Positions 4,080 through 64,000 of a stretch of DNA of 64,000 nucleotides are shown one piece after another; the first letter of the stretch is position 1, and every line of letters begins with the position of its first letter. The DNA comes from Anthoceros angustus. Its lineage: Eukaryota > Plantae > Anthocerotophyta. The position numbers and the translations under genes are program-made. The notes below the pieces were generated by a model. It made no database searches. It worked only from the letters and a program-made list of their open reading frames with translations, and was not told the origin of the DNA. The DNA lies in contig VJWM01000016.1 of the NCBI GenBank assembly GCA_010909165.1, positions 806,001-870,000 on the forward strand, in the 5' to 3' direction.

Positions 4080-6182
4080 ATGGCGCAGGAAGCCAGGGAA
4101 TTCTTTCCCATGGCGAGCGGGAGCGGGAGTGGGAACGGTAGCGCCTCATCAGGTGGAGACAGGGACATGGCGGACGCCGCAGAGCCGCCGCAGGCCCAGC
4201 TTTCCGGCTCCCCTCCAGCCCCGGACATCGGTGACAAGTCCCCCCTCCGGGTTACGCCACAGACACAGCAGCAGCAGCAGCAGGCACATGGACCGGTGGA
4301 GCCTTCCCCTTCTCTCCAAGCCTCCTCCAGCAGCGCTGCCGGGGACACCGCCGGCCCCCGCTTGACGGACGAGGACTACCAGCTCTTTCTGCAATTTAAA
4401 GGTAGGCTCCCTTCCCTTCCCTGCCCTTCCCTTGAACCGATCCGTCCCCTCCCCTCAATTTGCTGGAATGCCGTGAACCTGCGTACTCACACCTTTCCTT
4501 TCCTTTCCTTTCCTTTCCGGTGATGCAGGTTTGCTGCAGCAGCAGCAGCACGATGCTCGCCTCGGCTTGCTCACCCACTTCCCCAAGCCGCACTCTCCGG
4601 AAAGGCGTCTCCAACGCACCGCATTGGAAAATGCGGAGCCCGTTGCTTCCTCACCTGTAAAGCTCCTGGATCTGCCCGCCCTTCCCTTCCCTTCCTTTGC
4701 TCCTGCATCTTGACCTGACCTGACCTGACCTGACCTGATCTGACCCTCTGTTTGGTTGTGTCCATGGCCTGTTGGCGTACAGGGCGATCAGCATCCCAAC
4801 CGCCTTGCTCAAGCTCAAGCTCAAGCTCAAGCCCAAGCTCAGCACAGCGCGTCGTCGCCTGCCTCCGGCCTGTCCCTAGCTATCCCCGTGGCTGCCGACG
4901 GCCAGCGTCTGCCTTCAGGTTTCGCGCACCATGGCGGCTTCGGGTCGCCGATTCCTGGGCTGCACAGGCTCAACGGCCGCAGCACCATGATGCAGGCCCC
5001 GACCCACACCAGCCAAAGTCCCAACGGGAGCCCCGCGCGGGACCCCTCCGCCCTTCTCCCCCAAAGACTGATTTCGCAGGGCATGCTGCCGCGAGCCTCT
5101 TCTCCGCAGACGCCACCGGCCAGCAGGTATGGCCCCGCCCTGCTCTCTCTGCCCTCGATGGTTGCGATGGTGACTAAAAGCTTGGTATATGGTATGGCAA
5201 CACAGGCCTTGCTTACCGCATGCTCCCGGGAAGCTAACAGCCCAGCTCACTATTTTCTATGCTGGCACGGTGAACACTTACAACGATGTGCCAGAAGACA
5301 AGGTGGGTGGGTGCGTCGGTGCGTGCTTTTGCATGCACTACAGCAGGATGTGTCACCTTCTCCACAGGATTGCGGAACGAGGGGGATGCTGATGGAGGGT
5401 GGCAACTTGTGGCCTGCAGGCACGTGCAATCATGCTTCTTGCTGCGAGTGGAAGCACATTCACAATGTCACCAGCGGCCTCATCGAGTCCGGGCACCACC
5501 GCCATGCCCACCAACCTCACTATCGCGCCTCCCTCTTCCTCAGCCTCGGCACTCAGCTCGTCCCCGAGTACTCCTGCAGGGACATCTCAGACTGCGAGGC
5601 CGTTCACTCCAGGTAGCCCCTCCCTCCTCGACTCGACTCGACTCGACTCTGCTTATCGGAGCTTAAACCCTAAACGCCGGTCTCACCTGTTCCTCCTTCC
5701 GCAGAACTACCACAAGCCCGGAAGCAATCGCTGGCTCGCTTTCTGGAGAAACGCAAAGGGAGGTAGGTGAGGCTTCACCCAGGCCATCTTCCCCAGCGCT
5801 TGCCATCTCCACGCACAGGTCTGACTCACAAGATTGCAGTCCTTGTGATGTGGATCACAGGCAACGTGGAAAGGCCCCCTACGACATCGAGATGCGAGGT
5901 GCCTGTCCAAACGATTCCGGAGCTCGCATGAGCCCTCTCTCACCCTCTCAACAAAGGGCCGCATCACCAGGGTGTAGCGAAGCTTCATCCCCTTCCTCCA
6001 TGCCAGCCCAGCAAGCACCCGGCTCCGGCCTCGGCCCCGGCCGCGAGGATCAAGGACATTCCTCCCCGGCCCGTGCAAAGCGCAGCGGAACCGACCGTGG
6101 TTTGGGGAATCAATCCCCGGATGCTACCATCAACACCTTGCCCTCCAACTCCCAGCAACAACAGCAACTGCACGTTCACTAA
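4080..6182 (+). CDS. JAZ: JAZ (TIFY + Jas domain) jasmonate-signalling repressor, multi-exon
   Basis: AQLTIFYAGTVNTYNDVPEDK (TIFYAG at 5249-5266) continues as QARAIMLLAASG. Jas motif ELPQARKQSLARFLEKRKGR (5702-5762), split by intron 5763-5860 from QRGKAPY. Long low-complexity N-terminus. Confidence 0.92.
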
Positions 6183-6997
6183 CACGCCGTATCAACAATC
6201 TAAGCTCCAGCCGCATCGCTGCAGCTCCCCTCCTTCCCAACGGGTTTACGGTTGTAGATCAAGCTTCCGGGATAAGGCCCTCGGCTTCTCATTCTTGGAA
6301 ACATGAAATGCTAAGCTGACCTCGGAGTTGTGGCCCAACAGACGATCCCAATTCCAGTGTCGATTCCGGCTTCTATTGCACAGACCTGGTCCCCTTGTAA
6401 CTCAGGGACGCCTGGTCCGTACGAGTATATTTCCGAGTCTCGCCAACGTCCATGCTACTCTCGTGTACGGCGTCTAGTCCATTACGTTATGAATATTTAT
6501 GTGCGAAAGGTACCAGGAACGCCAGTTCTCACCGTCACGCTCATCCGAAGCAAAGCGTGTGGGGCCTTCCCTGTCCTTCAACCCCCAGTCTCTCCAACAA
6601 TATCTGATACACAAACGGGCAGCGAAGGAGCTCGGAAGGAGCAAGCTACAGCCGCGTGCCCTGGGTCACCATGACATTGTCTCTTGATGCACGTGGAAAC
6701 AAGCCGACGTGGGACATACCAACCTTTCTCTTTACACTGTGTTAGCCCGCCCCTGCGCCCGCCCATGTGCTGCAATTTCCCGCGAGCCATTGGCGGGGGC
6801 AATGGAAATCCGACGCAGCGCCGGGCTGCACACGCAACGCCACCACGTGCATGACAAGGATCACGGCAATTCGCCCTCACGACCAAGCGAGGGAGAGGCC
6901 AGCGGAAGCCAGCCAGCTCTTGCCCATGCCGCGTACCGTGCAGTACGCGGGCGGCAGATTCGAACGAGGCCGGCCAGTGGGAGAGCGGTCTTGGGAA

Positions 6998-9853
6998 TCA
7001 GCCGGGGCCCGTGTTTCCGGTCTGCTCACGGGATGCATGACAGTCCAACAGCAAACCCATGGTGCCCACCACGCCTCTGTCCGGAACCATGGCCCGGGCT
7101 TCCATGTCTCTCAACACCTTCCCGGCCTCCTCTACTTGCCCAGCCCGCACCAGGCCCGCCAGAAACGCGTTGCAGAAGGCGTCGTTGGGGCTCATCAGGC
7201 ACCGCCGCATGTCCTGTATCATGCTCGTCACCTCGTCCATCCTCCCGGCCGCCTGCAGCCCCGACACCAGGCCGCAGAAGAGGGACGCGCTGGGGATGAA
7301 GCCAGAATCCCGCAGCTCCTGGTATAGCTGCAGAGCGTCTTGCCACCGTTCATGCTTACAGAAGCCCTGGATCATGAGGATGTGAAACCCCGCGTCTGCA
7401 AACCCTCGCACCTTGGCCTCTTCGAACACCTTGGACGCCTCGGCGCTTCTGCCGGCCCTGGACAGGGAGGAGAGCAGGCTGCTGTACGTGTACTCGTCGG
7501 GCTCTGCGCCCAGCAGCTTCATGTCCAGGAACAGATGATAGGCCTTGCCCGTTTCTCCTGCCTTGCCCAGCACGTCTATCAGTATGTTGAAAGTGATGAC
7601 GCCAACGACCCATCCTTTCTCCGCCACCTCGTCTGCGAGTTTCACTGCTTCTGTAACCCGGCCCGATTTCGCTAGGGCTCCGATCAGGACCTGGTACAAG
7701 GCCAAGTTGGGTTCCACTCCCCTCCCCTTCATGACGAGGAAGAGGCCCATGGCTTCGCTCACTTTGCTGGCCTTTGCAAGAGCGTCGATGAGAGACGAAT
7801 ATGTGAATACGTCGGGTGTGAAACCTTCCTGTTGGAGCTGCTCGAACATGACGTAGGCTTCGTCCACCTTGCCCGCCCTGCTCAGGGCATCGATGACTGT
7901 GTTGAAGGTGATCAAGTCGGCCACCACCTGCTTCTGCCTCATTTCCTGGTACAACAGCATGACATCCTCCACCCTTCCCGTCCTTCTGTGGCCGTCCATT
8001 ATCGCATTGTAGCATTTCACGTCTGGGAGAACTCGAATTTTCATCTCCTTGAATATTCGAACCGCGTCATCCATGTAGCCCACCTTGGCAAGCCCATCCA
8101 GTATCGAGCAGAAAGTGGCACTGTCAGGGGTGGGAGCCTTACTCTTCATCATGTCCTCAAATAACTCCAACGCGCTATCGACTTTTCCATCTTTGCTGAG
8201 GCCAGAGATGAGGGTGTTGTACACGACCACGTCCGGCACAAGACCCTCCTGCTTCATGAGCTCAAACATTTTGAAAGCATCTTCGTATTGACATGCGACA
8301 AAGTGGGCTTTCATCATGGCAGAGTAAGTCACTACACAGGGATCAATTCCCTGGTTCTTCAACTCTTTAAAGAGCTTGACAGCCTCGTCAACCTGTCCCA
8401 ACTTGCCAAAACTTGTGATAAGGCTGCTGTACGTATATCGATCAGGCTGATAGCCTGAACTCAGCATCTCCTTATAGCAGCCGTGAGCATCCATGATACG
8501 CCCACCCCTTACCAGGATGGCAATCAGACAGTTGTAAGTGACACCGTCTGGCTGACAGCCAAGCTGTTTCATTTTCTTGAAAAGATCTACGGCAGCGTTA
8601 GGCTTCTTGGCTTTCCCAAAAGATTGCATCGCTGTAGTGAAGGCAAACACATCCTTCTCCTGGCCCTTTCCTTCAACATTCTCCAAGACAAGCATCAGCT
8701 CGTCAAATCGACAAGCTTCTCCAAGTCTCGTCACCATTGCATTCTTCGTGTAACTGTCATGTTCATACTCCGGTTGTCCACCAGCCCACTTGAAAAAGTT
8801 CCAAGCCAAATCTAAGCTTTCCACCTGCTTGACTACTTCACGAACATGATAAGGCTTTAGCCGCATATGTAACTGCTGCAGTGACCGTTCTGTAAGTGGC
8901 CCCCAATCTTTGTCTCGAGTCACAATATGGACAAGATTTTCAATTTTTACATCAGCTGACCAAGGTGAAATGGTCTTCGACGGATCAATGTGATCCTCCC
9001 CAGCCCCAAATGCCAAACCTGCCGTCTTCGAATTTATACCAAAAGAATGGGTACTCTCGGCTTTAGAAGACTTCTGGAACTGCAATCGCCTCCTTTCTCG
9101 TCTTGCATGGGAGGCAAACTCCCTGACAAGAGAAAAGCCACTGTACAAAACTCTGCGACCAGAGAACTTGTGTGACAAGGACACGGTACCCTGCTGGGAA
9201 TACCCCGCTATCAAGGTATTCCACCTCACCACAGCCTTCTGACCAAGTCCATCAAACGCTCTTTGAGCTTCATCCAAGCTGTTACACTTTCCATACCTGT
9301 CCAACAAGGAATTACATACAAACAGATGCGGCTCAACTTCACTGGCCAATACATCAGCATGGACCTGCTGCCCAGTTTTCAAGTCTGCTCCCCTTGCACA
9401 AGCCTGCAGGGCTGCCACGAATGCATGCCCATTTCGCTTCACACTTGACCTGCGCATCCGGTGATACAGTTGTATGCCCTGCTTAGCCTGCCCGTGGTTA
9501 ACATGTACAGAGATCATGCAAGACCATATGAAGGTATCAGCATTGGCAACCACGGTACACACATCCATCGATTCTTGCAACCTGCCATGAGAAGCAAACA
9601 TCCGCATCACATGGTTGCACAGGAGCGAGTCCGACTCATACCCCGCTTGCACGGCCAAACCATGTACACGGCGACCTAGAACCAGGTCCCTCTGCACCAC
9701 ACATTTTTTCAGCACAGCATAAACCAAAGATTGGGCAACACGGCAGTCCCTCTGCACCAGAACTCCCAGGGCCTCAACGGCCTCGGTGAGCCGCCCCTGC
9801 TGACATAGTTTCCTCACCGTTGAAACTGGGGCAAGTAAACCTGGCCACTGCAC
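6998..9853 (-). CDS. Pentatricopeptide repeat protein, 951-aa ORF: N-terminal PLS-type repeats then a long P-class array
   Basis: PLS-type motifs (FVAALQACA, FVCNSLLDRYGKC, WNTLIAGYSQQG) in about aa 1-222. Then AWNFFKWAGGQ and many 35-aa P-type repeats (PDxVTYNxLI, PDVVVYNTLISGL). Confidence 0.92.
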   Translation of the reverse strand: MQWPGLLAPVSTVRKLCQQGRLTEAVEALGVLVQRDCRVAQSLVYAVLKKCVVQRDLVLGRRVHGLAVQAGYESDSLLCNHVMRMFASHGRLQESMDVCTVVANADTFIWSCMISVHVNHGQAKQGIQLYHRMRRSSVKRNGHAFVAALQACARGADLKTGQQVHADVLASEVEPHLFVCNSLLDRYGKCNSLDEAQRAFDGLGQKAVVRWNTLIAGYSQQGTVSLSHKFSGRRVLYSGFSLVREFASHARRERRRLQFQKSSKAESTHSFGINSKTAGLAFGAGEDHIDPSKTISPWSADVKIENLVHIVTRDKDWGPLTERSLQQLHMRLKPYHVREVVKQVESLDLAWNFFKWAGGQPEYEHDSYTKNAMVTRLGEACRFDELMLVLENVEGKGQEKDVFAFTTAMQSFGKAKKPNAAVDLFKKMKQLGCQPDGVTYNCLIAILVRGGRIMDAHGCYKEMLSSGYQPDRYTYSSLITSFGKLGQVDEAVKLFKELKNQGIDPCVVTYSAMMKAHFVACQYEDAFKMFELMKQEGLVPDVVVYNTLISGLSKDGKVDSALELFEDMMKSKAPTPDSATFCSILDGLAKVGYMDDAVRIFKEMKIRVLPDVKCYNAIMDGHRRTGRVEDVMLLYQEMRQKQVVADLITFNTVIDALSRAGKVDEAYVMFEQLQQEGFTPDVFTYSSLIDALAKASKVSEAMGLFLVMKGRGVEPNLALYQVLIGALAKSGRVTEAVKLADEVAEKGWVVGVITFNILIDVLGKAGETGKAYHLFLDMKLLGAEPDEYTYSSLLSSLSRAGRSAEASKVFEEAKVRGFADAGFHILMIQGFCKHERWQDALQLYQELRDSGFIPSASLFCGLVSGLQAAGRMDEVTSMIQDMRRCLMSPNDAFCNAFLAGLVRAGQVEEAGKVLRDMEARAMVPDRGVVGTMGLLLDCHASREQTGNTGPG

Positions 9854-10132
9854 TCAGGCCCATTGAGATGAGATAACGGAGATGGAAATGCTCTGGCGAC
9901 CACTCAAGCTGATTCCGCCTCATCAGTTGACAGCAATCTGACAAGCCGACCCTCGGTACTCCGCTCGCCTCCAGTCGAGGATTATGACCACCCAAACTAA
10001 AATCCCACTACACACACGAATTTCAACAGGCGGGCACATCTACCCAAGGTGAACGTTCGTCAAGATTGTTCTTCAACTTGGAAACCTACAGCACGTCCAA
10101 GTGATCTAGGCACATTGTCAAAATTCATAACA

Positions 10133-11781
10133 GAAGAAGAAGAAGAATTTTATTGAAGTCCACTAAGACTTAACAACTTGCACCATGGTATGCCTAAGCT
10201 ACTTGCACCAAGGGCATCCATTCCCTTTAAGCACCCCATCTAAGTATCGATAGTCCACTAAGGACGGATTTCCATCATGGGACTTGGTACTTAACAACTA
10301 ACACCATGGTATGCCTAAGCTACTTACACCAAGGGCATCCATTCCCTTTAAGCACCCCATCTAAGTACCGATCCAAGTGCAGGATGCTTAGTAAGCACGT
10401 TCTTATAAATGTGTGTCCATTTGGCACATTTTCCTACCTCTACAACAGCCCGTTTTCTTATCCAGGAACTACGAGTAAAAACTTATTCAAACTCCATCTC
10501 GCGGCCTGTTTTGCTCGGCTGTTCACTCTACCTATGTTACCTATAGCCCGGGTTTGCCCCTTTGGATTTGTGCATTTCAAGAAGCTTTATCATATAGGAG
10601 TACTACATTGTATGTTTTGTGAAAGCATCTTTGTCTTCAAAGAATACTATTATTTATCATTAATTAATTTAATAAAATAATAAACTAGAGACTCACAAAG
10701 TAAAGGGGAAAAAAAAGAAGAGATATCAAGCTAGTATCCCTTTGCCGACCAGCAAATATGCGATATATATAGCATATGTGGTATACGAGGGCTGATGCTA
10801 AAATTATGATAACAAGGTTAGAATACTACTATGTATTTGGCATGTGTCATATATGGAATACCGATCTGGTCACGCGTCATCCACATTTTTTTAGGGTTGT
10901 GGACAGAAAGAAATAGTCCCGCCGTATACGGCGGAACTATTTCGTTATGTCACGCATGACCACATTGGTCTTGGCTGCGGCCCCCCGGTGTACCGATCTC
11001 GTCAAGCTGATGATGCACACAAACTTTTCACGATGTACACAAAAACGTTTTTTCTCTCAGGTTTAGGGTTGCGTTGCGTCTTCTCATGGGCATTTTGCGA
11101 TCCATGGCGGTATGTGTCTTATTCGCACTTTTTACCATTTATATTTGCGCTTACCGCACTCATCGCTTGTGCTCAGGTCGAGTGTGTTTGCCTCATGCGG
11201 TTGCGTGTTTGGCACTGGCTACATACAAGGCTGCAACGTTTCCTGCTGCCTATGGGGGTGCAGTTTCACATAGCACTAAGTACCTTGAAATAAGCTTGTA
11301 CCAGAAGGACCAACACAAAGAAGGCCGCGTGTTAACATGTATGTGTGGTGATCGGAACCCTAAAACCCTAAACTACAAAACATTTGCATGACACAATGGG
11401 AACACCAATGGGACCTGCATAGAACCTACCGAAGTTGTTGTGGCACATATTATATGTATATTGTATGCAAGAATCTTAACATGCAGTGGCATATTTCCGT
11501 AAAGTACACCCAAAGAAACAAAGTCACACACACAAAGCCGTGTGACCAGAACGGTATTCCATAGTCATAAAATGGCTTAGGCCAAATGGACGCACCTTTA
11601 TAAGAACCTCGTGATTAAGCATCCTGAGCTTAGATCGGTACTTAGATGGGGTGCCTGAAGGGAGTGGATGCCCTTGGTGCAAGTAGCTTAGGCACACCAT
11701 GGTACAAGTTGTCAAGTACCAAGTCCCATGATGGAAATCCGTGCATAGTGGACTTAAATAGAATTCTTCTTCTTCTTCTTC
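10133..11781. mobile_element. Non-autonomous foldback/MITE-like element with long terminal inverted repeats
   Basis: Arm 10133-10425 is the reverse complement of arm 11581-11781; both end in (GAA)n-aatt(t/c)tatt(g/t)aagtccacta. The left arm has an internal direct duplication. No coding capacity; TSD not identified. Confidence 0.75.
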
Positions 11782-46927: not shown

Positions 46928-47934
46928 CTCTTTCTAGGGCTTCCTGCCGGCTCCCTTCCTCCGCTAGTCCAATCCCTGCACGTCTTCCCATACGCATATC
47001 CTCCCCATGCCCACCAAGCCTGGAGGCCTGCGCTCTCCGTGCTGGCAAAAGCTGCGGCTAAACCACTCCCTGATGAAGCTCAACCAGATGCTTCCCTGAA
47101 GCACTCTCGTTCTGACGAGCACGAGCAGAAGTTGGCGGGTCGCTACCGGACGACGGGCACCAGCCTGTCGCCCCCGTGAAACGAAATGCGCTTGTCGGGA
47201 GAGGCGTAAATAATACCTACGAGTTGTTGCCGTTGCTGGGAAGAAGAGCTTTCCTGTAAACACAGAATGACGTTTGTTGTTGCATGGAGGCATCACTGCC
47301 TAAGGAAGTGAGTGGCTGTTGCCTGGAGACGAGGCCACCGCGACGGGCAATGCCGGTTCTCCGGTGGACGCCCGTCGACACCGTGGGCTGCACGACGTAC
47401 GAAGCTTCCAGACCAGGCATCTGAAACGAGAAAACGTCGTCGCTTCAACCCTAATTTCGTCATCACTCTGACCGAGGCGGAGGCAGAGGAGAAGGCGACG
47501 CCAAGTGCGCAGGGTGGCAGGTGCGCGGCCGGCCGGCCGGCACGTAGCCATCTGCGCGCATGCAACCGTGTCTTCCATTTGCAAGCACGCGAGAGATGCC
47601 GGCCAGCGCAGTACAGTACAGTAGGTGAACATTCCCTCGTCGTGCATTCTTGATCAGCCACAGGCAATTTGACTGGTAAGCCAAACTGATCCCAACTTCG
47701 ACTATCACTCAACACTCTGTTGTTGACACACTTCTTCCACCAACTGCACTTCCCGTAGCCGGTAGGTGTGCTGGTTACCGGCAAGCTTTTGCGGCACCCA
47801 CCATGCCGTGAGAGAACGAAGGGGCGTTGATGACGGATTGAGGCGAGAAATCGAGGCCGCGGCAATCTGCCACATTCAATTCTAGAAAGGTCTTGTATGG
47901 TGGACAATTACTATTGTCAAATACGTTTTTTAGT

Positions 47935-50250
47935 CTAATGCTCCGTGAGGCCTTCCAAGACTTGGAAGTAGTTCGGGAAGGTCTTCCTTACACACTTCGG
48001 GTCGTTGATGGTGATGGCACTGTCTCCGGCGGCGGCCAGGGAGAAGGCCATGGCCATGCGGTGGTCATCGTAGGTGTCGATGGCAGCGGATTTGATGTAC
48101 TTCGGGGGAGTGATGATGCAGTAGTCAGCTCCTTCCTCCACATGGGCACCAAGCTGTTGCATGCCATGCGCACAAGGACGATGCAGTTTAGAAGCCAAGA
48201 TGTACGTACGTGGTTACGTATGAAAGGATGGACACAGGAGAACCAGCAGGCAGCGCACCTTGGCGAGCTCAGTGCAGATGGCGATCATTCGCTCTGTTTC
48301 CTTCACTCTCCAACTTCCAACTGCACCCAAGCTCAAGCAAAGCAAGCACATATGCTGAGGCCTATGAAAGACAAGTTTATTATTTCACAGGTTGCGTTGT
48401 TTTCGGGCTTCAGGTTTCTCACCATCTCGGATTGCCGTGGGGCCGTCGGCGAAGAGAGCAACCACAGCTAGTGTCATGGCAACATCAGGCATGGCATTCA
48501 TGTCCACATCGATTCCTTTCAACCGTTTGCCGGTGGCCTCAGAGATGGGAGCACCTGTTACCGTGACACTGTGCTCTGTCCACTCAACCTTGGCTCCCAT
48601 CTTCTCCAACACCTCAGCGAACTTTACATCACCCTGTGGGCAAAGGCACGACGGCGGTCAGGACCACAACGTTGGATATGATACCAGGAAGATGACTTGG
48701 AACACACCAATGTGACCAACAACCTGGAGGCTGCTTGTTCCACAACCTTCCACTGTCACTTTTCCCCCTGTCACAGCAGCGCCAGCAAGAAAATAGCTTG
48801 CACTTGAGGCATCTCCCTCAACATACGCACGTCCGGGAGTCCTGCATCAGATTGAGAGCCGAGGCACCACCATCAGCATCCAAGTATGAGCATGCATCAG
48901 GAAGTATAAAACCCTGAACCACTGTCCGGCACGGCAAGGGGTGCGCGTTGTACTTGTAAGTCTGTCCACCTTTGATGAGAAAGCGCTCCCAGCCTTCATA
49001 TCGCTCTACTTTCACTCCAAATCTTTCCATCAACTTCAAGGTCATGTCCACATAGGGCACTGAGATGAGCTTATCCACAATCTCAATGGTGATATCCCCC
49101 AATGCAAGCGGAGCTGCGAGAAGCAGAGCAGTAAGATATTGGCTGCTCACTGCGCCTGAAAGCTTCACCTGCACAGACAGAGGTGAGTGCTAAATCACGG
49201 CACCAAGAAAGGAAATCAAACCCATGAAGGATTGTAGAGGGGCGAGGATCAGAATCTCACTGTTCCTCCAGGGAGCCCGCCTTTGGCATTGACTGCAACA
49301 GGAGGACAGTTGGTGCCCAGTGTGCACTCCACATCTGCACCAAGCTGCTTCAAGCCCGACACAAGGTCCCCGATTGGCCTCTCCCGCATGCGAGGAACGC
49401 CATCCAAAATGTATCTGCCAAGAGCACCAACACGTGGGGTTTAAGCTTGCAAGTCCACCAGAAAAAAACAGAATACGGAACACTGCAAAATTTGTGACGT
49501 CAATGACAAGCAAAGCGTGGCACAACATGCAGACCTGGCGTTGCCACCAGCCACGGTCACCGCCGCTGTCAAAGGTCTCATAGCTGTTCCAGCATTCCCT
49601 AGAAACAATTGAATTTCTTGCTGAGCAGTCTGTCCAACGGGGAATCGGCCTCCAGAACCCACAATGCTCACTTCATTGGCTGCACGGTCCTCGGACACAT
49701 CCAACCCCAGGGCCGTCATGGCGCTCAACATATAGCGCACATCATCACTGTCCAGGAGGTTATCCACCACAGTCGTGCCCTGGCATCACGAATTCCTCAG
49801 CTCCCAAGACTCACACCCAATTCACACCAAGGACGCCAGCAAGAAAGGGAGCAACATCCAGGTGCGGTAACAGGCAGAACCCACCTCGGAGAGAGCTGCC
49901 AGCAAAAGCAGACGGTTGGAGAGGGACTTGGAGCCGGGCAGCTTGACAGTGCCATTGATCGCCTTCACAGGCTGCAACACCACCGTCTCCACCTTGTCGG
50001 CGGCAGCCGTGGAAGCCGACACCAGCAGCCAGTGGCGGGCAGTCTGCACCCGCACCCTGCTCGGAAGCGGCCGCTGAAGCTGCAGCTGCAGCTGCTGCTC
50101 GTCCGCAACCACATTCCTGACAGCACCCAGCACGGAGCAGGATACCCGGAGCGGGCGCTGCCATCCCTGCACCTCCTGCGCAGGCAGCTGGGCAGCTCCG
50201 AGTGAAGCAGGTGGCGCCCTGAGAGCGCCCATGGCCGCCATTCTCCACAA
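47935..50250 (-). CDS. EPSPS: EPSP synthase (AroA) with plastid transit peptide, intact, 8 exons (copy 2)
   Basis: [19 protein letters not shown]|[111 protein letters not shown]. All junctions GT-AG and in frame. Confidence 0.96.
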
Positions 50251-51364
50251 CCTTCAGGTGTCAACAGCACAGCATACCAAATGAAAGCTCAGCACTCAGC
50301 TGTCAGCTGGATCCTGCCCTGCCCATATCAGTCTACTTGCAGCCTGCAAACACCGCCTCGTGCATCAAACCAACTCCTCGGAACACGCCTCTTCCAATAA
50401 TTCAGCAGCCGGGGAAGTACAAACACACAACCGGACACTCGGCTGCGACTGCCTTGGTGAGGTGAGAGAGAGAAGGGGGAGGCCAATAATGCTCCATTTT
50501 CCTGCTGTAAAGATTTCCCTTTCCTCTACTCTACTCCATGTTATCTCCATGGATGCAATGTAATGCCATGCTGTTAGGACTCACAAACATCACAGTCAGA
50601 GCTACGCCACAGGATCAACACAGTTAGCAGACACAAGAAGCAGAGGCAATGGATGTCGGCTACAACAGCACCACTGGCTTGAGGTAAATAGTAAAGCTAG
50701 TCACTCACTCATATCAGCTAGACAGGACAATTATATGGTGCGCAGAAGCACTACATGTGTAGTATAGACTAGGATAGCCCTTGGGGCTTGGCATAACCTC
50801 GAGGACATGACTCTAATCTCCATATATTCAGCATCCTATATACTACGAGAAAGTAGCAGAGGCTTGCACTTGCCCATGTCTGCAGAATGAGCGGACTATG
50901 TAGGTCTCGCTGGCAGGTATCACACAAGCGGACATAGTCTTGCCTCCAGAGACGTTGCTACTTTTATTCATTCGAGGTTTCAGAAGCCAGAGCTAGCTTC
51001 TCACAGCATGCATCTTCTTCCTCTTTTTCCTTTGTCACACAGCGGCTTCAACACCAAGTTTGTGGTGTGTGGTATGTGTGTACGTAGCTCCCTTCCTAAT
51101 TCAGACGTAGATACAATGCTACTCTCTACCTTGCGTGAAATTTCATCCCTCTTCTCTCTCGACAACCCACGACAAATCCTTTACATCAATGCCAGACAGT
51201 ACAGCAAGTTTCTTGTTAGCTCCAGCTGACTCTCTGAGCCTGTCTACTCCTGTGCACCTGCCTGAAGCTGCATCCACATTTGCCACGAGGATGCATGGAG
51301 ACGCCTGCTGCTAAACCTGGCTCACAAGACTGTCAAAGCATTCCGCTAGGACAAAACGAGACTG

Positions 51365-51800: not shown

Positions 51801-52421
51801 AGAAAACATAGAGATGAGTGATCAACATGGGAGATGAGTGATCTTCAGTTTAAAATCAGAGATGGGACAATGGCACGTCCTAAATGAGAGACATCTCTCC
51901 CAGCCTGGGCTGATCAGGAAGGTAGAACAACGCATGCCTCGCATGTGAGAGATTTAGAAGTCATTCCACCAGCGGCACGCTCTGCACTTTAAAGAGGAAC
52001 GCAAATCTGCACTTGCCTTGTGAAATCAAAAGCTACAGCTACAGCTCTACAATTGGCTCGTTCTTTCCTCCCTACCCTCTATGAGCTAGCACTTGTTCAC
52101 TAGTGAACACAAGGAGGCTGTGAGATGTTTCTTCTGCATGCAGCATGCGCACTTGAACTTACGAAATGACCAGGAAAGGACAGATGAGAATGCACCAACC
52201 GTGCCTGGCCACCACTACTTTCTTGTGTCAATTGCAGTCGAGCCTGAACGTCCGAAATGAGTAGGAAACGACAAATGAGAACGCATTGGAACAATGAGAA
52301 GGCGTTGGAATGCACCAACAGTGTCTCTCTCGAGACCATACCTGACAGCGGATTGAAGCTGTCATCGCCACACCAACTCCCGCTGGCCAGGCAAGTGAGC
52401 TCCGCTGGCCAGGCAAGTGAG

Positions 52422-55400
52422 CTATGGTGAAGACCAGTACAGTCCTCTTGTGAGGGTGGACTTAAACTCCGGACACTGGAATTTCTTTTCGATGCCCTGT
52501 CCTGATGCGCTTGCGACTTTGACCTCCATATCCGTGACCTTGCCAATCACGCTTGTTAAGATGCTGAACACATCTGCCGTTTTAGGGCCGTCGACGATGG
52601 CTTGCATAAAAGCTATGATAAAGTTTGCGCCTTTCTCGGTATCTCTGAAGGATTGTTGTCCAGGACTGGTGGAGTAAACAATGAGACAATCGGGCAAAGA
52701 TTCCGGGGCTCGGACTTCTCCGGCTCTCTTGCTCACCACTTGGCTCTGCTCAACTTCAGAGTCCTCGGCTTTTTTGATTTTGGTAAGGCTGTCAAATTGT
52801 CGACAAGCATTGATCACAAAGACCTTAGGCTTGTTTGCAAGATACCTGGATTCCGAGATGGGCTTCACGATATCATCATCAACATATAGCTTCTCGCCAT
52901 TTTCTTCACTCATGACGACGTAATCTCGTCCATTTTCATCGATCCCCCCATGGCCATTAATGCAACACAGAAAGCAATCGTCGTTAGCCAGGGTAGGGAG
53001 CTTGGCAAGTCTCCTAAGATAAGATTTGACGTCCTCAGATTGGTTCACCACTATATCTGTATGGAACTTCAAATTCTTGAGAAGAGCTTCAAGTCGCCCT
53101 CTGTCGACAGCTGCACCAGGTCTTTTCTCTTCTATGCTCACAATAACTGCCCAACCTCTCAGTTTGCCTGCTTCCACATTGTCGTTAGGATAACACTCTG
53201 CAAAATGTTGTCCGCTCTCCACTGCCTGCACTTGCGGGGATAGCTGTGTAGGAGTTCCCCGACATACGCTGCTGTTTTTTGATTTCGATCCTACAACAAG
53301 TGCAACCTCAGAGCATGCAAGGAACAATGTATATTACAAATTTGGCAGTCATCCTACTAGAAACTACTTCTCGAAAACCTGGACATTCAAACGCATTCAG
53401 ATGGTTCAGAAATCCTAACCTTCAGACTCTAGTTCGGCTCTGGCCAGATCCCTTTTTCGCCCCAAGATGATATGGCCATCTACCACGGTTGCATACTCCT
53501 TGTTGGCCTTTAAAATAGGTGGCTGGGCTTGTGTACTGGTGGAGATAGGTCCCCAAGACTGCGTGTAGTGTGCAGAGCCCTTTTCTTTTGTAGCAGCCAC
53601 CTCCTTGATAAGCTTATTTGTTAGAATGCACTGATGTTTTCTGTGTCTACAAGGCGTGAGGGACACTACACATTCACGCCTCAGGACACCTTCAACTAAG
53701 GTAACCCCTGCACAACCTTCATACGAAGCACAAAATGAACGAATTTGAGATACAATATGCTCTTGCAAGAACGATAAGGACCTCAAATAACCTTCGATGG
53801 ATCGAGCTAATATATCTATGTAACAACCTATTTCTGCATTAAATTCTACAAAGATATCAAGAAACTCTGCAGATATGAGAAGCATGTTCGGCTGCAGCTT
53901 TACGGTCGAATCAATCCATCTAACATCCTCATCAACCCAACCTTTCTCCAAACAATAGGTGTACAATAAAACCTATCACACGTACAGACAAAAACAATGT
54001 AGACGTGGTCAATAACAGAAAGCATTCACAAACCAGCGTTGCGAGTAGGACTAAGGAAAGATTCATCTTTGAAAGAGTTACATACTTGCAACCGAGGGAA
54101 AAATCCTGGTGTGAGAAATGTGCAATCTTGATCATCACATTGTAAACGCAAACCGATGAAGATGTAATCAGTAGAATCATCCTCTGCAGGCCATTTCAGT
54201 TGTCGTTCTGCTCCCGCTACATCTTCTCCATGCATACATAATGGTATAAAGTAACGCACTTGATCTTCTCCATCTCTACTTTCCAAACAAAGGTGTAACT
54301 CAAGAAGGAGTTGGATAAATTGTTCTTCGCTCACAATGGTCTCTTCAAGCCCAACCTTGTTCAAAGACATCTTTAGAAGCTTGCTCAACCCACACTTGCT
54401 TATAAACCCATTTTGAAGCCAATCTCGTCCATCACCAGGTTCGCCAAATATTCCAATCAATTGACTAAAAACCCCCATTCCCAGCCATTGGAGGTTAAGC
54501 ACCACAAGCCCTGAAATCTCAAAATATATGATTTCCCCGGAATCCTTAAGGTACGATGCAACCACTTTCCAACTATCCTCCTTTACCATGAAATCCAAAA
54601 GAAATCTTTTATAATCCTCCGAAATATGTGGATGCCGTAATGCCACCTTACATGTGTTATGGAATAACTCAATAAACTTGTCAGTACAAATGATTGGAGT
54701 ACCTTGTTGCTCTTCAGCCCACCTTTGTACATGTGTCCTTGTTTGCTCACAAATATTGGGAACTGGAGCCAACTTACTAACAACTCGATGCAACTTCTTC
54801 TCCATACTAGTGCGCAATGCATACACATCTTCCCAACTTTGTCCATTGATAAAAGTAGGTTCATACGATAACTCCACCAAATTCTTAAATTTTTTTTTCA
54901 CCGATGACATCTCTTCACATATTGCAACAGAATGCTTATCCCCTTGAAGTTTGTCACCAAATGTTACGATTACATTTACATAAGGTTTCACTTGTTGACT
55001 CAAAGGTTTCCCCTGTTGTTGACCCAATCGTGCATTGGAAGCAATAAATTTTAACCAATAAATAAATTCTTCACTAAAATCTTTTCTATGCTTCATATCT
55101 ATGGTTGAAAAATTCCCACCGAACTTGAATGGATTGTAAACAAATAAGAAGACAGAAGAATTATTAACATTAGGAAAAACAAAATCATGAAGCGCGTGAT
55201 ACTCTCTGTGGCCTGCAAGGTCCCAAATTGTAATCCTTAATGCGGGAGCATCTTTTATCACCTTCACTTCAAATCCAAGTGTTCGAGGTATCTCTTCCGA
55301 AATTGTTTCGCGTTCCATTTCACCATAGTCTTCGTGTGTCTCCATCTTCATCAGAGTATTTCTTATGGTCGTTTTGCCTGAAACAAAATCATTTTAGTGA

Positions 55401-58400
55401 TCATTCCTAACCGGCACGGAGATATGAGCAATATGCATACACGTCACTCGCTCTACATTCAACATGCCCTATGCCGCTTACCTGCGTATGGAAATCCACA
55501 AAGTACAAGGCGACATGATTTGACGGGCATTGTGGAATTCCTGCCAGAGCTCTTCTATATTCCCTGTTTTGCCGCAGCACTTCATCCACTGCAGCACCTT
55601 TCCCTGTCTTTTCCACGCAGTGTTTTCGAAAGATATACGCTCCAGATTGGTGTTCACCTGCAGAGTCTGCATGAGCTCTCGAAACATATCGTCATCCAAC
55701 CCCTTCCAGTCATCCAAGACCAACGTCTTGAGGTAGCGATTGGTCTGCAACGCCTTGTAAAACATCTTCGAGAGGTTGCACGATCCCGCACGCGTCTGAA
55801 CTAGGTGCAAACTTTTCACGAACTGGCACCTCTGCAGGATTGGCATCAGTTTGGAGTAGTCGTCGTTATGGCTAGAGTAATTCTGTCGGACTGTCACAAG
55901 AGTGATGCTGCTGTTGTCACACATTCCCTCCAATCCCTGGCTTATAAGACAGCTAGATAGCTAAATGCGTTAAAGTGGTGTTGGCGCGCAGCATGCGGGC
56001 CACAGCTTCTCCCAATGAAGCGTCGATAGGCTCGTGGCCAGATCCAACTATGTCTAGCCGGAGTTTTCTGACAGACTCGTTGGCAGAAAGAGGCTTGGGA
56101 GCAACACTCCCAGCCTCCTGCTCTGCGTCCTGCATACCAGGGTCAATGATCGGGCCAACAGCATGGCCGTTATCCCTGCCTGCTTTGGCTTACGTCGGTT
56201 AAATCCTATCTGCAGGTACTCAACCGTGGTGTTTTGTGCCAGAGCATTCCCTATCTTCAACGCTCCCGCCTCATCCATGCCTATATTGCAAATCCCCAGG
56301 TTGCGAAGTGTGGGACTGCTAGTCAGGATGTCAGCCAGGTGGGCTGCTCCACCACCTTCCACTAGAGTGTCTCCAGAAACATACAAGCTGCGGGCACTTT
56401 CTCCTATGGTCGGGTTCCCAGAAAGATACAAGCTGCGGAGCACCGAGCGGCGATTCTCTCGCAGGGCTGCAGCTATGCGACCCAGTCCATCGGCAGTCAT
56501 GCCAGTGAATCCCATATTAAGAATTCGCAAGGTGCGGCTCGATCGCAAGGTAGCTGCCAGTGCAATGCAGGCTGCACCTGTTCCAAACCCACGGTACCCA
56601 TGCAAATCCAGCAATTCCACTACTGCATTCGAGTTTAGACTTTCCAAGAACGCCGTTGCCTCTGCCACGGTCACTCTGCAATTTCGACGATATAGAGGGT
56701 CGAGCTCGATTGATCTGAGCGTGGGACATTTACCCATAGCTGTCATAAGGCGCTTGCTAAGGCGCAAGCGCAGTTCCTGTTCCGCCTTTGGATGTTCAAC
56801 GTCCATCTCGAACAAGTACCCATAGGCGTCCACACGAGGAAGCCGACTTAGAGTAGGCGAAGGTGACTCGAGCTCCGCAAGCAGGGCAAGCAGCTCCTCA
56901 GACACAGGAACTGGAATGGTGACAACAAAGACAGGGAATGGAGTCAAAGCGGCAGACTGCATTCATGATTCAAACGTCTTCATAGTTTCAACAAAAACAA
57001 CAGCAGCTTGGAAGTTGGAATGTAAGTTGTTCCATACCTGCGTCGCCTGAAGAGGTGGCCAAAGTGGCCATCGCCGGTAGTGGCACCTGTTCCGAACCTG
57101 CAGAAGTGAGAGAAGTCAGCTCCCTGTCATGTGTACCTAGTTTTTGGGTTCTAACTTGTGAGACATACAGATGAAGGACAAGGGTAGCTAGCTAGCTTGG
57201 GGCACCTACCCTGCTGTCCAGCGCTTCTTCTCTGTATGTTCTTTGTGAGAGCATTCTGGATGTGTATCCCTTTGCCTTCACTGGACCAGGATGTGTTCTT
57301 GATGGAAATGTTCTCCAGGACGTTTTTGCAGTTGGGTCCCAGAGACCGCATCAAGTCCCGGAACATGTAGTCATCCAACCCATCCCAGTCGTCCAACACA
57401 AGCGTCTTGAGGCTGGGGTTGTTGTGCAACCCGCGGAAGAACTCCTTGGTGAACCTGCTGGTCCCGTAGGGTTTCAAAAATCTTAGGCGCAGCTCTTCCA
57501 GAGTCTTGCACTTCTGCAGAATCTCCATCACCAAGGGATCCAGCTCCTCCTCCTCCACGGAATGGTAGTGCTCCAGAAGCAGTGTTGTGACGCTGCTGTT
57601 GTGAGCCAGTCCCGACAACCCGCGGGTCACAAAAAAGCTGGTTACGTTCAGGACCTTCAAAGTGGTGTTCGATCGAAGCATGGCAGCCACAGCTTGTGCG
57701 AGCCCGGCCTCCACAACCACACCCTTCCCCCCTGCCAGCCCCAGTACCTCAAGCCAGAGCTCGGTGATGGACTGGTTAAACGGAGGAGCAGCACTTGGAC
57801 CGTGAGACTCCTCCTCCGACGAGGACACATCGCAGCTCAGGGCTCTCAAAACAGGGATCAACATTGCTGCCTGCTCAGGGTCCTTCTGCACGTTATATCC
57901 GATATCAATCCTGTTCAGAGTTCTGCTGCGAGCCACAGCGTCTGCAATCACCACGGCGCCCGCACCATCCATCCCTATCGAGCACATCCCGAACACTGTC
58001 AAAGCACGACAGTTGGACAGGATGCCGGCAACCTGTTGCGCCCCGGCAGCATTTCCTATCTCATTCCCATCGAGGTACAACACGCGGAGGACAGATCCGC
58101 TGTTGTCTCGCAAGGCTGCGGAGATATGCCCCAGGCCTTCCACTCTCAGGTCGAGCCCCCGCAAGTCCAGAGCCCCCACGCTGCGGCTGTGTCGCAGGAC
58201 CACGTCAGCGAGTGCAGCGCACGCTTCCGTCGTCCCGAATCCTTGGATGTGGTTCAAGAAGAGGCTTTCCAACACCCGATTGCGCTTCAACCCGTTCAGC
58301 AATGCCAATGCCTCCACGTCCCTCACGCTGTACAACCCGAGCTCCCCAAGGGATTCAGATTGATCGTCTTGAGGCTCCGGCAGTTGCCGATGGCGGACAT

Positions 58401-58568
58401 TATCCGCAAGCGCAGCTCCCGCCTGGACGCGTCTGAATCACGCTCCCGGCCAGGAAGTAGCTGCCCCAGGAACCCGCAGGAGGAGATCTGGCAGGGTCGG
58501 GGAGACGGACTCGAGGCTGACGAGCAGGAAACCAGCTCGGCGGGAAGAGGCGGAGGCGGTTCCGCCAT
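52422..58568 (-). CDS. LRR-LRR-Roc-COR-caspase (peptidase C14A-like) gene, TORNADO1-related; LRR part carries about 7 small frameshifts (assembly error or decay)
   Basis: Predicted exons 58568-57210, 57097-57038, 56910-55482, 55377-54086, 53972-53420 and 53290-52422; all introns GT-AG, 104-129 bp, phase-compatible. Roc: LCGFPYA|GKTT, RTLG, WDLAG, TFGD. COR: FFPRLQ|V, FCASYEGCAGV..EGVLRRECV..LTPC. Caspase: RPGAAVD, CINGHG, KPKVFVINACR, YSTSPG..SFR, QCP..STLTRGLY. Confidence 0.85.
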
Positions 58569-58771
58569 AGCCGAAACTTTAGCAGAGCAGGGAAACCAGC
58601 TCGGCGGGAAGAGGCGGAGGCGGTTCCGCCATAGCCGAAACTTTAGCAGAACGTGCGAGCAGGACAACCAGGTCGGCAGGAAGAGTCGGTTCCGCCGTAG
58701 CCCAAACTTCACAACAACGTCACAGCTTCTCCGACTCATGCCGAGCCACCGGGCTCGGAAGAGGCAAGCGC

Positions 58772-58839
58772 AGGACAACAGAACCGAGGGCTAGGACAAC
58801 AGAACCGAGGGCTAGGACAACAGAACCGAGGGCTAGGAC
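58772..58839 (+). repeat. 3 x 21-bp tandem repeat upstream of the Roco-caspase gene
   Basis: Unit ggacaacagaaccgagggcta. Confidence 0.9.
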
Positions 58840-60440
58840 ATACAATGCCCGTAGGCTTCTATGCAGATGTCTCTGGCTTCTGGCAAGTAGGAAGGAAAGG
58901 CGTGATTTTGATTCCTCACTGCTGGCCGGCGCGGAGCAGCACGCAATGGAGCAAATTGGGCAACGTGCATGCCAGCGAGGGGCGTCGACTTCTTTACAAT
59001 CACTATACATTACATTACTTGCGTCACATGGCTGCCAGCCCTTCAGTCAACATTTTTCATTCCTGCACGATGTCTGCCGAATGTTGTCGGCTTTCACGAC
59101 TTTCTCTTGTGGACGACCACGGCCTTCCAGCTTCCAGCCTCCAGGAAATCCTGACGTCAGGATGAAGTGCTCTACCCAGGTGGCGGATGGTACATGGACA
59201 AAAGCTTTTTATGTTGGCGGTGAATAGTAGTGAAAGAGAGAGGCATTGTAAGGGCATCATCTGGGGCGGTTCCGGCAAGAGTTCTTGTCTGAACGACTCA
59301 CGGCCTTGTCTGGACCTGCATTCGATGTTGACATGGCTGGACTCCATCCTCCTCTTCAATGATGCTGGCATACATCTACAATCCATAGTGTGCTTGATTT
59401 TTGTGGGACTGTCACGTTCCAGGATTTACACATCGATCATGCGTCCACTGCAGAAGGCGTGGGGGAGGGAATGAAAACCTGCTTATCTCGGCTGCTTCCC
59501 ACTCAAAGCCCAGGATCCTCACACAACTATTGCCACAGAAGCTCCTTGCTTCTCATCCTGCTCACAAGTTCCTCCCCCAGCCAGCCATTTTCTGGGACGA
59601 GCTAACCTACTTCGCCTCCAGCTTTGGCTGTTTACAAACGCCTGACTCCTCGCTGCGACCTCTGCGTCTGCGTCGGGGTTCTTGTTAGAATACCTGTCGA
59701 CCCACCAAACTGTTGGATCCCCCATGGATCCTGTGGCCACGCCCATCCAGGCGTAAGACCTTCGATGACGAGCACGGGCACAAGTTGGCGGGTCGCTACC
59801 GGACGACGGCCTTCCAGCTTCCAGCCTCCAGGAAATCCTGACGTCAGGATGAAGTGCTCTACCCAGGTGGCGGATGGTACATGGACAAAAGCTTTTATGT
59901 TGGCGGTGAATAGTAGTGAAAGAGGCATTGTAAGGGCATCATCTGGGGCGGTTCCGGCAAGAGTTCTTGTCTGAACGACTCACGGCCTTGTCTGGACCTG
60001 CATTCGATGTTGACATGGCTGGACTCCTCCTCCTCTTCAATGATGCTGGCATACATCTACAATCCATAGTGTGCTTGATTTTTGTGGGACTGTCACGTTC
60101 CAGGATTTACATCGATCATGCGTCCACTGCAGAAGGCGTGGGGAGGAATGAAAACCTGCTTATCTCGGCTGCTTCCCACTCAAAGCCCAGGATCCTCACA
60201 CAACTATTGCCACAGAAGCTCCTTGCTTCTCATCCTGCTCACAAGTTCCTCCCCCAGCCAGCCATTTTCTGGGACGAGCTAACCTACTTCGCCTCCAGCT
60301 TTGGCTGTTTACAAACGCCTGACTCCTCGCTGCGACCTCTGCGTCTGCGTCAGTTCTTGTTAGAATACCTGTCGACCCACCAAACTGTTGGATCCCCCAT
60401 GGATCCTGTGGCCACGCCCATCCAGGCGTAAGACCTTCGA

Positions 60441-64000
<3,560 letters not shown>

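Follow-up and report, generated by a model that had tools for sequence, protein, structure and literature searches.

The window, a 64,000-nucleotide stretch of Anthoceros angustus contig VJWM01000016.1, holds on its minus strand at 58568-52422 a gene whose open reading frame (ORF) pieces read, in order, as two RNI-like leucine-rich repeat (LRR) blocks, the GTPase domain Roc, COR-A followed by a probable COR-B, and finally a caspase. The Pfam matches on the ORF pieces are LRR_6 (56054-56962, a weak match), Roc with COR-A (54026-55351), and Peptidase_C14 (52422-53327). With a probability of about 0.6, these parts form one polypeptide of ~1,400-1,850 aa, in which RNI-like LRRs, a TORNADO1-type Roc, COR-A/COR-B, and a linker lead to a C14A-like caspase, giving a sensor, a switch, and a protease in one gene of a plant family that is small and evolves quickly. 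The fusion architecture is real: it is conserved, and a related sample expresses and splices it. In the window copy, the LRR half is doubtful.

From the GTPase to the protease, the gene is open in the window itself. Exons 55377-54086, 53972-53420, and 53290-52422 encode an unbroken 903 aa that extends from the P-loop Lys to the caspase stop. The first of these (exon 4, 54086..55377) carries the KTT of G1, the DLAG of G3, TFGD at the G4 position, COR-A, and the start of COR-B (IGLRLQCDD...FLTPGFFPRLQ), as placed by Pfam, a PDB profile search, an AlphaFold2 (AF2) model compared by Foldseek, and an alignment to TORNADO1. Intron 4 (53973..54085; GT..AG, 113 nt, phase 0) separates it from exon 5 (53420..53972), which encodes the remainder of COR-B and a linker ending in ...AELESE-G; this exon is homologous to the region preceding the caspase in the related ORFs P0002 and P0005 described below, and to moss-like Roco loci. 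The COR-caspase junction is formed by intron 5 (53291..53419; GT..AG, 129 nt, phase 1), which contains an in-frame TAG (53417-53415) 3 nt from its start. Exon 6 (52422..53290) consists of a linker and the caspase, identified by Pfam (Peptidase_C14), PDB, AF2, and Foldseek matches, with the His codon at 52952-52950, the Cys codon at 52805-52803 (within VINACRQ), and the stop at 52424-52422.

Splicing of this gene is observed in RNA of a related sample that is 1-5% divergent from the window (run X1), from which DNA was also sequenced (run X3). X1 contains 49% of the words sampled from 52422-55400, and its contigs are spliced at 57097|57210, 55377|55482, and 53972|54086, as well as at an intron of ~98 nt in the 3' UTR (52243-52341, minus strand). 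The corresponding joints run from 57095 to 57208 (cut +2), from 55376 to 55481 (cut +1), from 53970 to 54084 (cut +2), and from 52242 to 52341. One X1 contig, composed of 55035-55376 and 55481-55604, links exon 3 to exon 4. The DNA contigs of X3 keep the introns, with 53276-53593 reading across intron 5, and 55120-55470 and 55441-55724 entering intron 3 from its two sides. Since introns kept in X3 DNA are removed in X1, the latter represents genuinely spliced RNA.

The initial annotation regarded intron 53291-53419 as the key junction of the fusion and called for cDNA across 54086/53972 and 53420/53290. At the first of these positions X1 provides a joint. At the second, two X1 contig ends fit exactly: one carries an overhang of 17 letters, TGTTTTTTGATTTCGAT, before 53419, and the other an overhang of 10 letters, TCAGACTCTA, behind 53292. 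Both strings are unique in the window, where they occupy 53273-53289 and 53422-53431, that is, the opposite side of the intron, which X3 DNA retains. No joint is tabulated for 53420|53290 because the overhangs are short. The COR-caspase splice is thus present in RNA of the related sample, and X1 depth in the bin containing intron 5 is about one quarter of that in the next bin.

The fusion also exists in a second organism. The best matches to the caspase exon come from a single sequencing run (SRR33208241), as ORFs on its contigs. At locus L001, a Roc-COR ORF is followed by P0002, which aligns to both the COR-B exon and the caspase exon of the window, and at L002 the ORF P0005 likewise aligns to both. 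COR-B and caspase are therefore joined in single uninterrupted ORFs, and the fusion is conserved independently of any splice model. A word-indexed search with P0002 for further COR-B-caspase fusions returned only its own paralogue. The reading of Roc-COR and caspase as separate genes is rejected in view of the RNA junction together with the single-ORF relatives.

The GTPase portion belongs to the Roco class. Pfam matches Roc at E 4e-4 and COR-A at E 1e-3, both under the gathering score. A profile built from the Roc-COR-A exon and its homologues retrieves from the PDB sequences M. barkeri Roco2 (E 1e-6), the COR region of C. tepidum Roco (E 5e-6), and the Roc of LRRK2. An AF2 model of Roc-COR (pLDDT 67.5) has LRRK1, LRRK2, the RocCOR of MbRoco2, and CtRoco as its top 10 Foldseek matches. 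The DxxG motif is present as DLAG, and the P-loop GFPYAGKTT is complete only with an extra base carried by the RNA at 55533; judged by its motifs, the RNA version has an intact P-loop together with DxxG.

The same portion resembles TORNADO1, as the initial annotation had proposed. In a BLASTP comparison, the spliced protein is 28% identical to TORNADO1 over 355 aa (E 1e-26), compared with E 3e-17 for the unspliced query. The alignment includes a shared FLTPGFFPRLQV motif at the start of COR-B and runs across the 54086|53972 splice, and residues ~405-456 of the spliced protein align with the start of the Pfam COR-B of TORNADO1. Related Roco loci conserve the segment at the COR-B position. At 31% identity, the nearest relatives of the Roc-COR are moss-like, exon-like ORFs on AT-rich metagenome contigs that share the same PRLQV exon boundary, and a Sphagnum protein is also among the Roc-COR matches. 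With TORNADO1 and moss-like sequences as its nearest relatives, the Roco is of plant type and the caspase is an addition to it. Within the TORNADO1 family, the gene is a divergent relative and not an orthologue, given its extra caspase and an identity of only 28%. The AT-rich contigs (L008-L011, ~5179-11022) carry an LRR ORF upstream, Roc-COR-A, and then COR-B with a C-terminal region of ~390 aa that has no Pfam match and no caspase; this region may be another effector carried on the same Roco chassis.

The C-terminal protease was taken to be a caspase from the outset, and structure and sequence comparisons agree. The caspase exon matches Peptidase_C14 at E 1e-31. All 60 PDB sequence matches listed (113 at E <= 0.001) are caspases, the best being Spodoptera caspase-1 (E 1e-11). 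An AF2 model (pLDDT 86, pTM 0.84) has exclusively caspase-3/6/7/8 or CED-3 as its top 50 Foldseek matches, and the ESM Atlas neighbours of the domain are animal caspases. His113 (52952-52950), Gly114, and Cys162 (52805-52803) are conserved, and Arg56 and Arg215 align with the S1 arginine pair that is found in Asp-specific caspases. The QACRG motif reads NACRQ, with Gln replaced by Asn as in most of the plant clade. With its His/Cys dyad and both S1 arginines intact, the domain is predicted to be active-site-competent and may be specific for Asp. Metacaspase or orthocaspase identity is rejected, as neither occurs among the 60 listed PDB matches or the Foldseek top 50 and the relatives with a name are either p20 proteins of liverworts or caspases of animals.

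The caspase exon has no close relative in an exhaustive search without profiles, which returned only 53 matches below 1e-10, the best at 34-38% identity (E 3e-29). No annotated full-length protein with the window caspase exon was found among 1.84 billion representatives; the word-indexed search weighs only proteins of similar length, and with a single exon as query it cannot reach the named full-length proteins of multi-exon genes. The nearest proteins with a name are 'caspase family p20' proteins of liverworts, followed by insect, fish, and mollusc caspases. In a maximum-likelihood tree, the window caspase, the other Roco-linked caspases, the liverwort proteins, and caspase ORFs that adjoin NB-ARC-LRR ORFs form one clade (support 100/98), separate from the remaining, animal-dominated rows. 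Some members of this clade have lost His or Cys; the window copy keeps both.

Other members of the clade are associated with different partners. In L004 (8001-16614), L005/L006 (591-6749), and L007 (139-5984), caspase-clade ORFs are followed by NB-ARC-LRR ORFs on the same strand, and in L007 an alpha/beta-hydrolase-like ORF lies between the two. These loci are candidate caspase-(hydrolase)-NLR (nucleotide-binding leucine-rich repeat receptor) genes, probably of bryophyte-grade organisms, and no description of such genes was found in the searchable literature. The liverwort p20 proteins, P0010 and P0151-P0156 (Marchantia polymorpha Mp6g00860/Mp6g00900), P0019 (M. paleacea), and P0020 (Riccia fluitans), have an alpha/beta-hydrolase of SERAC1 type ahead of a C-terminal caspase of animal type, and their annotation is automatic only. 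They share the caspase clade, 31-34% identity, and the [IV]N[AS]CR active-site motif with the window gene, but their N-terminal partner is the hydrolase instead of LRR-Roc-COR.

Upstream of the caspase and the Roc-COR exons, the LRR half of the gene comprises three exons. Exon 1 (57210..58568), defined by the frame map and X1 RNA, starts at the ATG at 58568 and encodes an N-terminal leader and RNI-like LRR block 1, which reads directly from the sequence as a paralogue of LRR block 2. After intron 1 (57098..57209; GT..AG, 112 nt) comes exon 2 (57038..57097), a 60-nt linker (GSEQVPLPAMATLATSSGDA) placed by its translation and by X1 contig coverage. Intron 2 (56911..57037) is a prediction only; its acceptor at 56912-56911 is the sole frame-open AG within the scanned 56960-56895. 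Exon 3 (55482..56910) contains LRR block 2 (Pfam LRR_6), the Roc strand beta-1, and the first half of the P-loop (RLVLCGFPYA-G). It ends at intron 3 (55378..55481; GT..AG, 104 nt, phase 1), which splits the P-loop Gly codon. Because this intron divides the P-loop and leaves beta-1 and GFPYA-G on the LRR exon, LRR block 2 and the GTPase are physically one gene. The initial annotation had described phase-compatible GT-AG introns joining LRRs, Roc-COR, and caspase. This description holds for introns 54085-53973 and 53419-53291; the LRR-to-Roc join is out of phase in the window as it stands.

Several points weigh against a single product running from the LRRs to the caspase. The RNA evidence consists of short assembler contigs, none of which spans LRR to caspase as a single molecule. 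COR-B is recognised by neither Pfam nor the PDB profile search, and its hhalign alignment to TORNADO1 is non-significant. Within ~3 kb, the LRR half of the window copy also carries seven frame breaks relative to X1 RNA, which the initial annotation had missed. The window is 1 nt short at ~58526, 58444, and 58343 in exon 1 and at 56139, 55601, and 55533 in exon 3, where it is also 2 nt short at ~55960. At each break, the resemblance to the paralogous LRR block passes to another frame; frame reconstruction is incomplete for the first stretch, 58527-58440. When the RNA letters are used, the frame is continuous from the LRRs into the canonical P-loop GFPYAGKTT. In view of the seven breaks, the window copy either has been assembled wrongly at this place or is an allele or paralogue in decay.

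The alternative that survives best is accordingly that the window copy is a pseudogene, or a decaying allele or paralogue, producing at most an LRR-less Roc-COR-caspase from the ATG at 55530. Its chance is put a little below even. Seven indels within so short a stretch, relative to an expressed RNA version, favour decay, as does a further frame-breaking indel at 55609 in a DNA contig of the RNA-yielding sample. The assembly reads a long A run in the Roc exon correctly. The adjoining EPSP synthase gene (window 47900-50260, minus strand), which served as a control of assembly quality, has a similar GC content and is intact in 8/8 exons, with an N-terminal transit-peptide-like leader, so the breaks in the LRR half may be real. 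A generally error-ridden assembly is weakened as their cause by the intact EPSP synthase; a consensus error specific to the locus may be the cause. On the other side, all seven breaks are short deletions in the window and 6/7 lie in short G or C runs, a pattern consistent with errors of consensus or polishing where the sequence is GC-rich, internally duplicated, and present in several copies. X3 depth climbs from ~70 to ~230-270 across the LRR stretch, the correct frame is free of stops over ~950 LRR codons, and the 3' half retains 903 open codons with an excess of synonymous changes. Between local consensus error and real decay of this copy, decay is given slightly less than an equal share.

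The X3 DNA contig in question has a 1-nt deletion at 55609 and an insertion at 55533 and is frame-broken, and its 55609 deletion is absent from RNA of the same sample. One sample thus has several coexisting alleles or paralogues that differ in integrity and in their indels.

The proposed function of the LRR-Roc-COR-caspase protein follows from its parts. In Roco proteins, nucleotide state governs the interconversion of COR-B-mediated dimers and monomers, as established for the C. tepidum protein, and initiator caspases are activated by induced proximity. By analogy, the LRRs would sense a ligand or a modified host protein, and sensing would change which nucleotide state the Roc-COR switch is in and, through COR-B, whether it is a monomer or a dimer. 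Two protease domains would then be brought together or released, leading to activation by induced proximity and to autoprocessing. The result would be signalling by proteolysis or cell death, and immunity is the most likely setting. As the caspase lies ~100 residues behind COR-B, a nucleotide-dependent COR-B interface would control the meeting of two protease domains. A logic of sensor, GTPase switch, and proximity-activated caspase can reasonably be inferred on these grounds, and an immune or cell-death function is plausible.

Indirect support for an immune-type logic comes from the adjacency of the caspase clade to NB-ARC-LRR modules and from the substitutions between X1 and the window. Only the differences listed by the comparison tool were scored, a partial set that may mix paralogues and that also tempers the case for the proposed receptor; in it, the Roc-COR-caspase part has 14 synonymous and 19 non-synonymous changes, the synonymous ones exceeding the 25% neutral expectation (one-sided binomial p 0.02), and the LRRs have 0 synonymous and 15 non-synonymous changes (Fisher p 0.002 for the contrast). 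Such counts would correspond to a constrained switch and effector combined with a diversifying sensor, the pattern expected of an immune receptor. The coexisting variants with different indels also fit an immune-type setting, and the logic has a precedent in bacterial LRR-AP-GTPase-COR-effector proteins (PMC8195603).

A role outside immunity is unlikely, though it deserves weight: the fusion may serve development or membrane trafficking, the roles of TORNADO1 and the LRRKs, with the caspase as a substrate-specific processing protease. TORNADO1, the nearest named relative of the Roc-COR and the only plant relative to have been characterised, functions in patterning of the Arabidopsis leaf and not in immunity (PMC4104024), and this too counts against the receptor interpretation, while the purifying selection on the Roc-COR-caspase half is compatible with a developmental task. 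A family that is multi-copy with broken members is less suited to such a task, as are scored LRR substitutions that are all non-synonymous. Caspases of the same clade are moreover coupled with NB-ARC-LRR and with hydrolase modules that are typical of NLRs in bryophytes, and the bacterial counterparts are conflict systems (PMC8195603).

The LRR-Roc-COR-caspase product has also to be weighed against a form without the GTPase. One X1 contig joins 57038 to ~53587, inside the COR-B exon, with GT..AG borders and in frame, so that Roc-COR is skipped and the product would consist of LRR block 1, a linker, and the caspase; the canonical exon 2-exon 3 joint, 57038|56910, is not seen in X1 RNA. Both observations stand against the full-length product. 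Together with an in-frame ATG at 56962, an alternative start in frame with LRR block 2, and with a depth at the skipping joint like that of the canonical joints, they could mean that the main product is an LRR-caspase and that the Roc-COR form is a separate transcript starting near 56962. This is improbable. The skipping joint has a side of 46 nt, occurs in a single contig, and may represent an isoform or derive from a paralogue, and gaps in contig coverage carry no proof. Since exon 3 encodes both LRR block 2 and Roc beta-1, there is an LRR-Roc-COR-caspase product regardless.

Least credible by far is a pair of products in which intron 5 is retained, Roc-COR ends at the TAG, and the caspase is transcribed or translated alone, an outcome that the initial annotation had named as fatal to the fusion: the position of that TAG and an in-frame TTG upstream in the caspase ORF (53327) would suit it, but X1 contig ends cross 53420|53290 exactly, depth falls over the intron 5 bin, the relatives hold COR-B and caspase in one intronless ORF, and the caspase exon has no ATG at its head.

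Compared with described systems, the fused LRR-Roc-COR-caspase gene combines familiar parts in an arrangement found among bacterial proteins. TORNADO1 has the same RNI-like N-terminal LRRs, Roc, and COR-A, and a COR-B whose start aligns with the probable COR-B of the window gene, but it has no protease and acts in leaf patterning, whereas the window gene adds a caspase after COR-B and has a duplicated LRR part. In bacteria, LRR-AP-GTPase(Roc)-COR proteins have C-terminal effector domains of at least 24 kinds, and caspase is one of these (Kaur, Iyer, Burroughs, Aravind, eLife 2021, PMC8195603). These conflict proteins share the domain order, the variable LRRs, the Roc-COR switch, the C-terminal effector, and the presence of several paralogues per genome. 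They are prokaryotic, in contrast to a eukaryotic gene with six exons, a TORNADO1-type Roc-COR, and a caspase of a plant clade nearest to animal caspases. As the nearest relatives of both Roc-COR and caspase are eukaryotic, the plant protein looks independently assembled and not transferred whole. Transfer of the whole gene from bacteria is unsupported: the nearest Roc-COR sequences share the plant exon boundary and TORNADO1 motifs, and the nearest caspases are of plants and animals.

The apoptosome and the inflammasome (Apaf-1/caspase-9; NLRC4 or NLRP with caspase-1) likewise link a repeat sensor and an NTP-dependent oligomerisation switch to a proximity-activated caspase. In the window gene, however, the switch is a Roc-COR GTPase instead of a STAND ATPase, and the caspase is covalently attached instead of being recruited via CARD, DED, or PYD. 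No ORF piece of the gene has a Pfam match to NB-ARC or NACHT, and the gene is NLR-like in layout only. Among eukaryotic Roco proteins, DAPK1 and others also combine Roc-COR with cell-death or immune modules, and LRR exons diversify (PMC4104024; PMC3341825; PMC11378527). Examples include a Trichoplax Roco with CARD/TIR and the LRR-ROCO candidate receptors of brown algae. Unlike the window gene, none of these has a protease on the same chain.

In current papers, PMC12521494 among them, plants are still said to lack caspases and to use metacaspases instead. Nothing relevant to a plant Roco-caspase, caspase-NLRs, or bryophyte caspases was found in the searchable literature. The initial annotation's view of a new system, with an architecture undescribed in plants, is therefore retained as far as plants are concerned and given up in its broader form, as LRR-Roc-COR-caspase has already been catalogued in bacteria (PMC8195603).

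In the window gene, a plant has a caspase domain of animal type whose active site is intact, wired to LRR and Roc-COR modules, and its sister domains are wired to NB-ARC-LRR. The proteases behind the 'caspase-like' activities of plant cell death have been the object of a long-standing search. A tentative extension, held with well under even confidence, is that non-seed land plants possess true caspase-type, probably Asp-specific proteases as built-in executioners of intracellular immune receptors, shuffled among Roco, NB-ARC-LRR, and hydrolase partners. If true, this would constitute a receptor-fused caspase death pathway in plants, parallel to the apoptosome and inflammasome, with a GTPase replacing the STAND ATPase as the switch. 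The gene family itself bears on whether receptor-fused caspases execute immunity or death in plants, on how a Roco GTPase, the class of LRRK2, can gate enzymatic output via dimerisation, and on the extent to which bacteria, animals, and plants have arrived at parallel immune-receptor logic.

The composition and surroundings of the gene show further irregularities. GC content shifts within it, from 0.50-0.61 in the LRR exons to 0.38-0.42 in Roc-COR and 0.46-0.48 in the caspase (window 55400-58600 versus 52400-55400), which suggests a chimeric history or GC-biased gene conversion among LRR paralogues. A tandem duplication of ~59 nt at window 58552-58611 includes the start ATG; the RNA sample has one copy. 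Further upstream, at 58780-58860, a 21-nt unit (GTTGTCCTAGCCCTCGGTTCT) is present three times, and the DNA sample is short by 42 nt there. Just upstream of the gene, window 59100-60600 contains near-identical ORF fragments on both strands (e.g. ...FQPPGNPDVRMKCSTQVADGTWTKAF...), which indicates a duplicated repeat or a transposon remnant.

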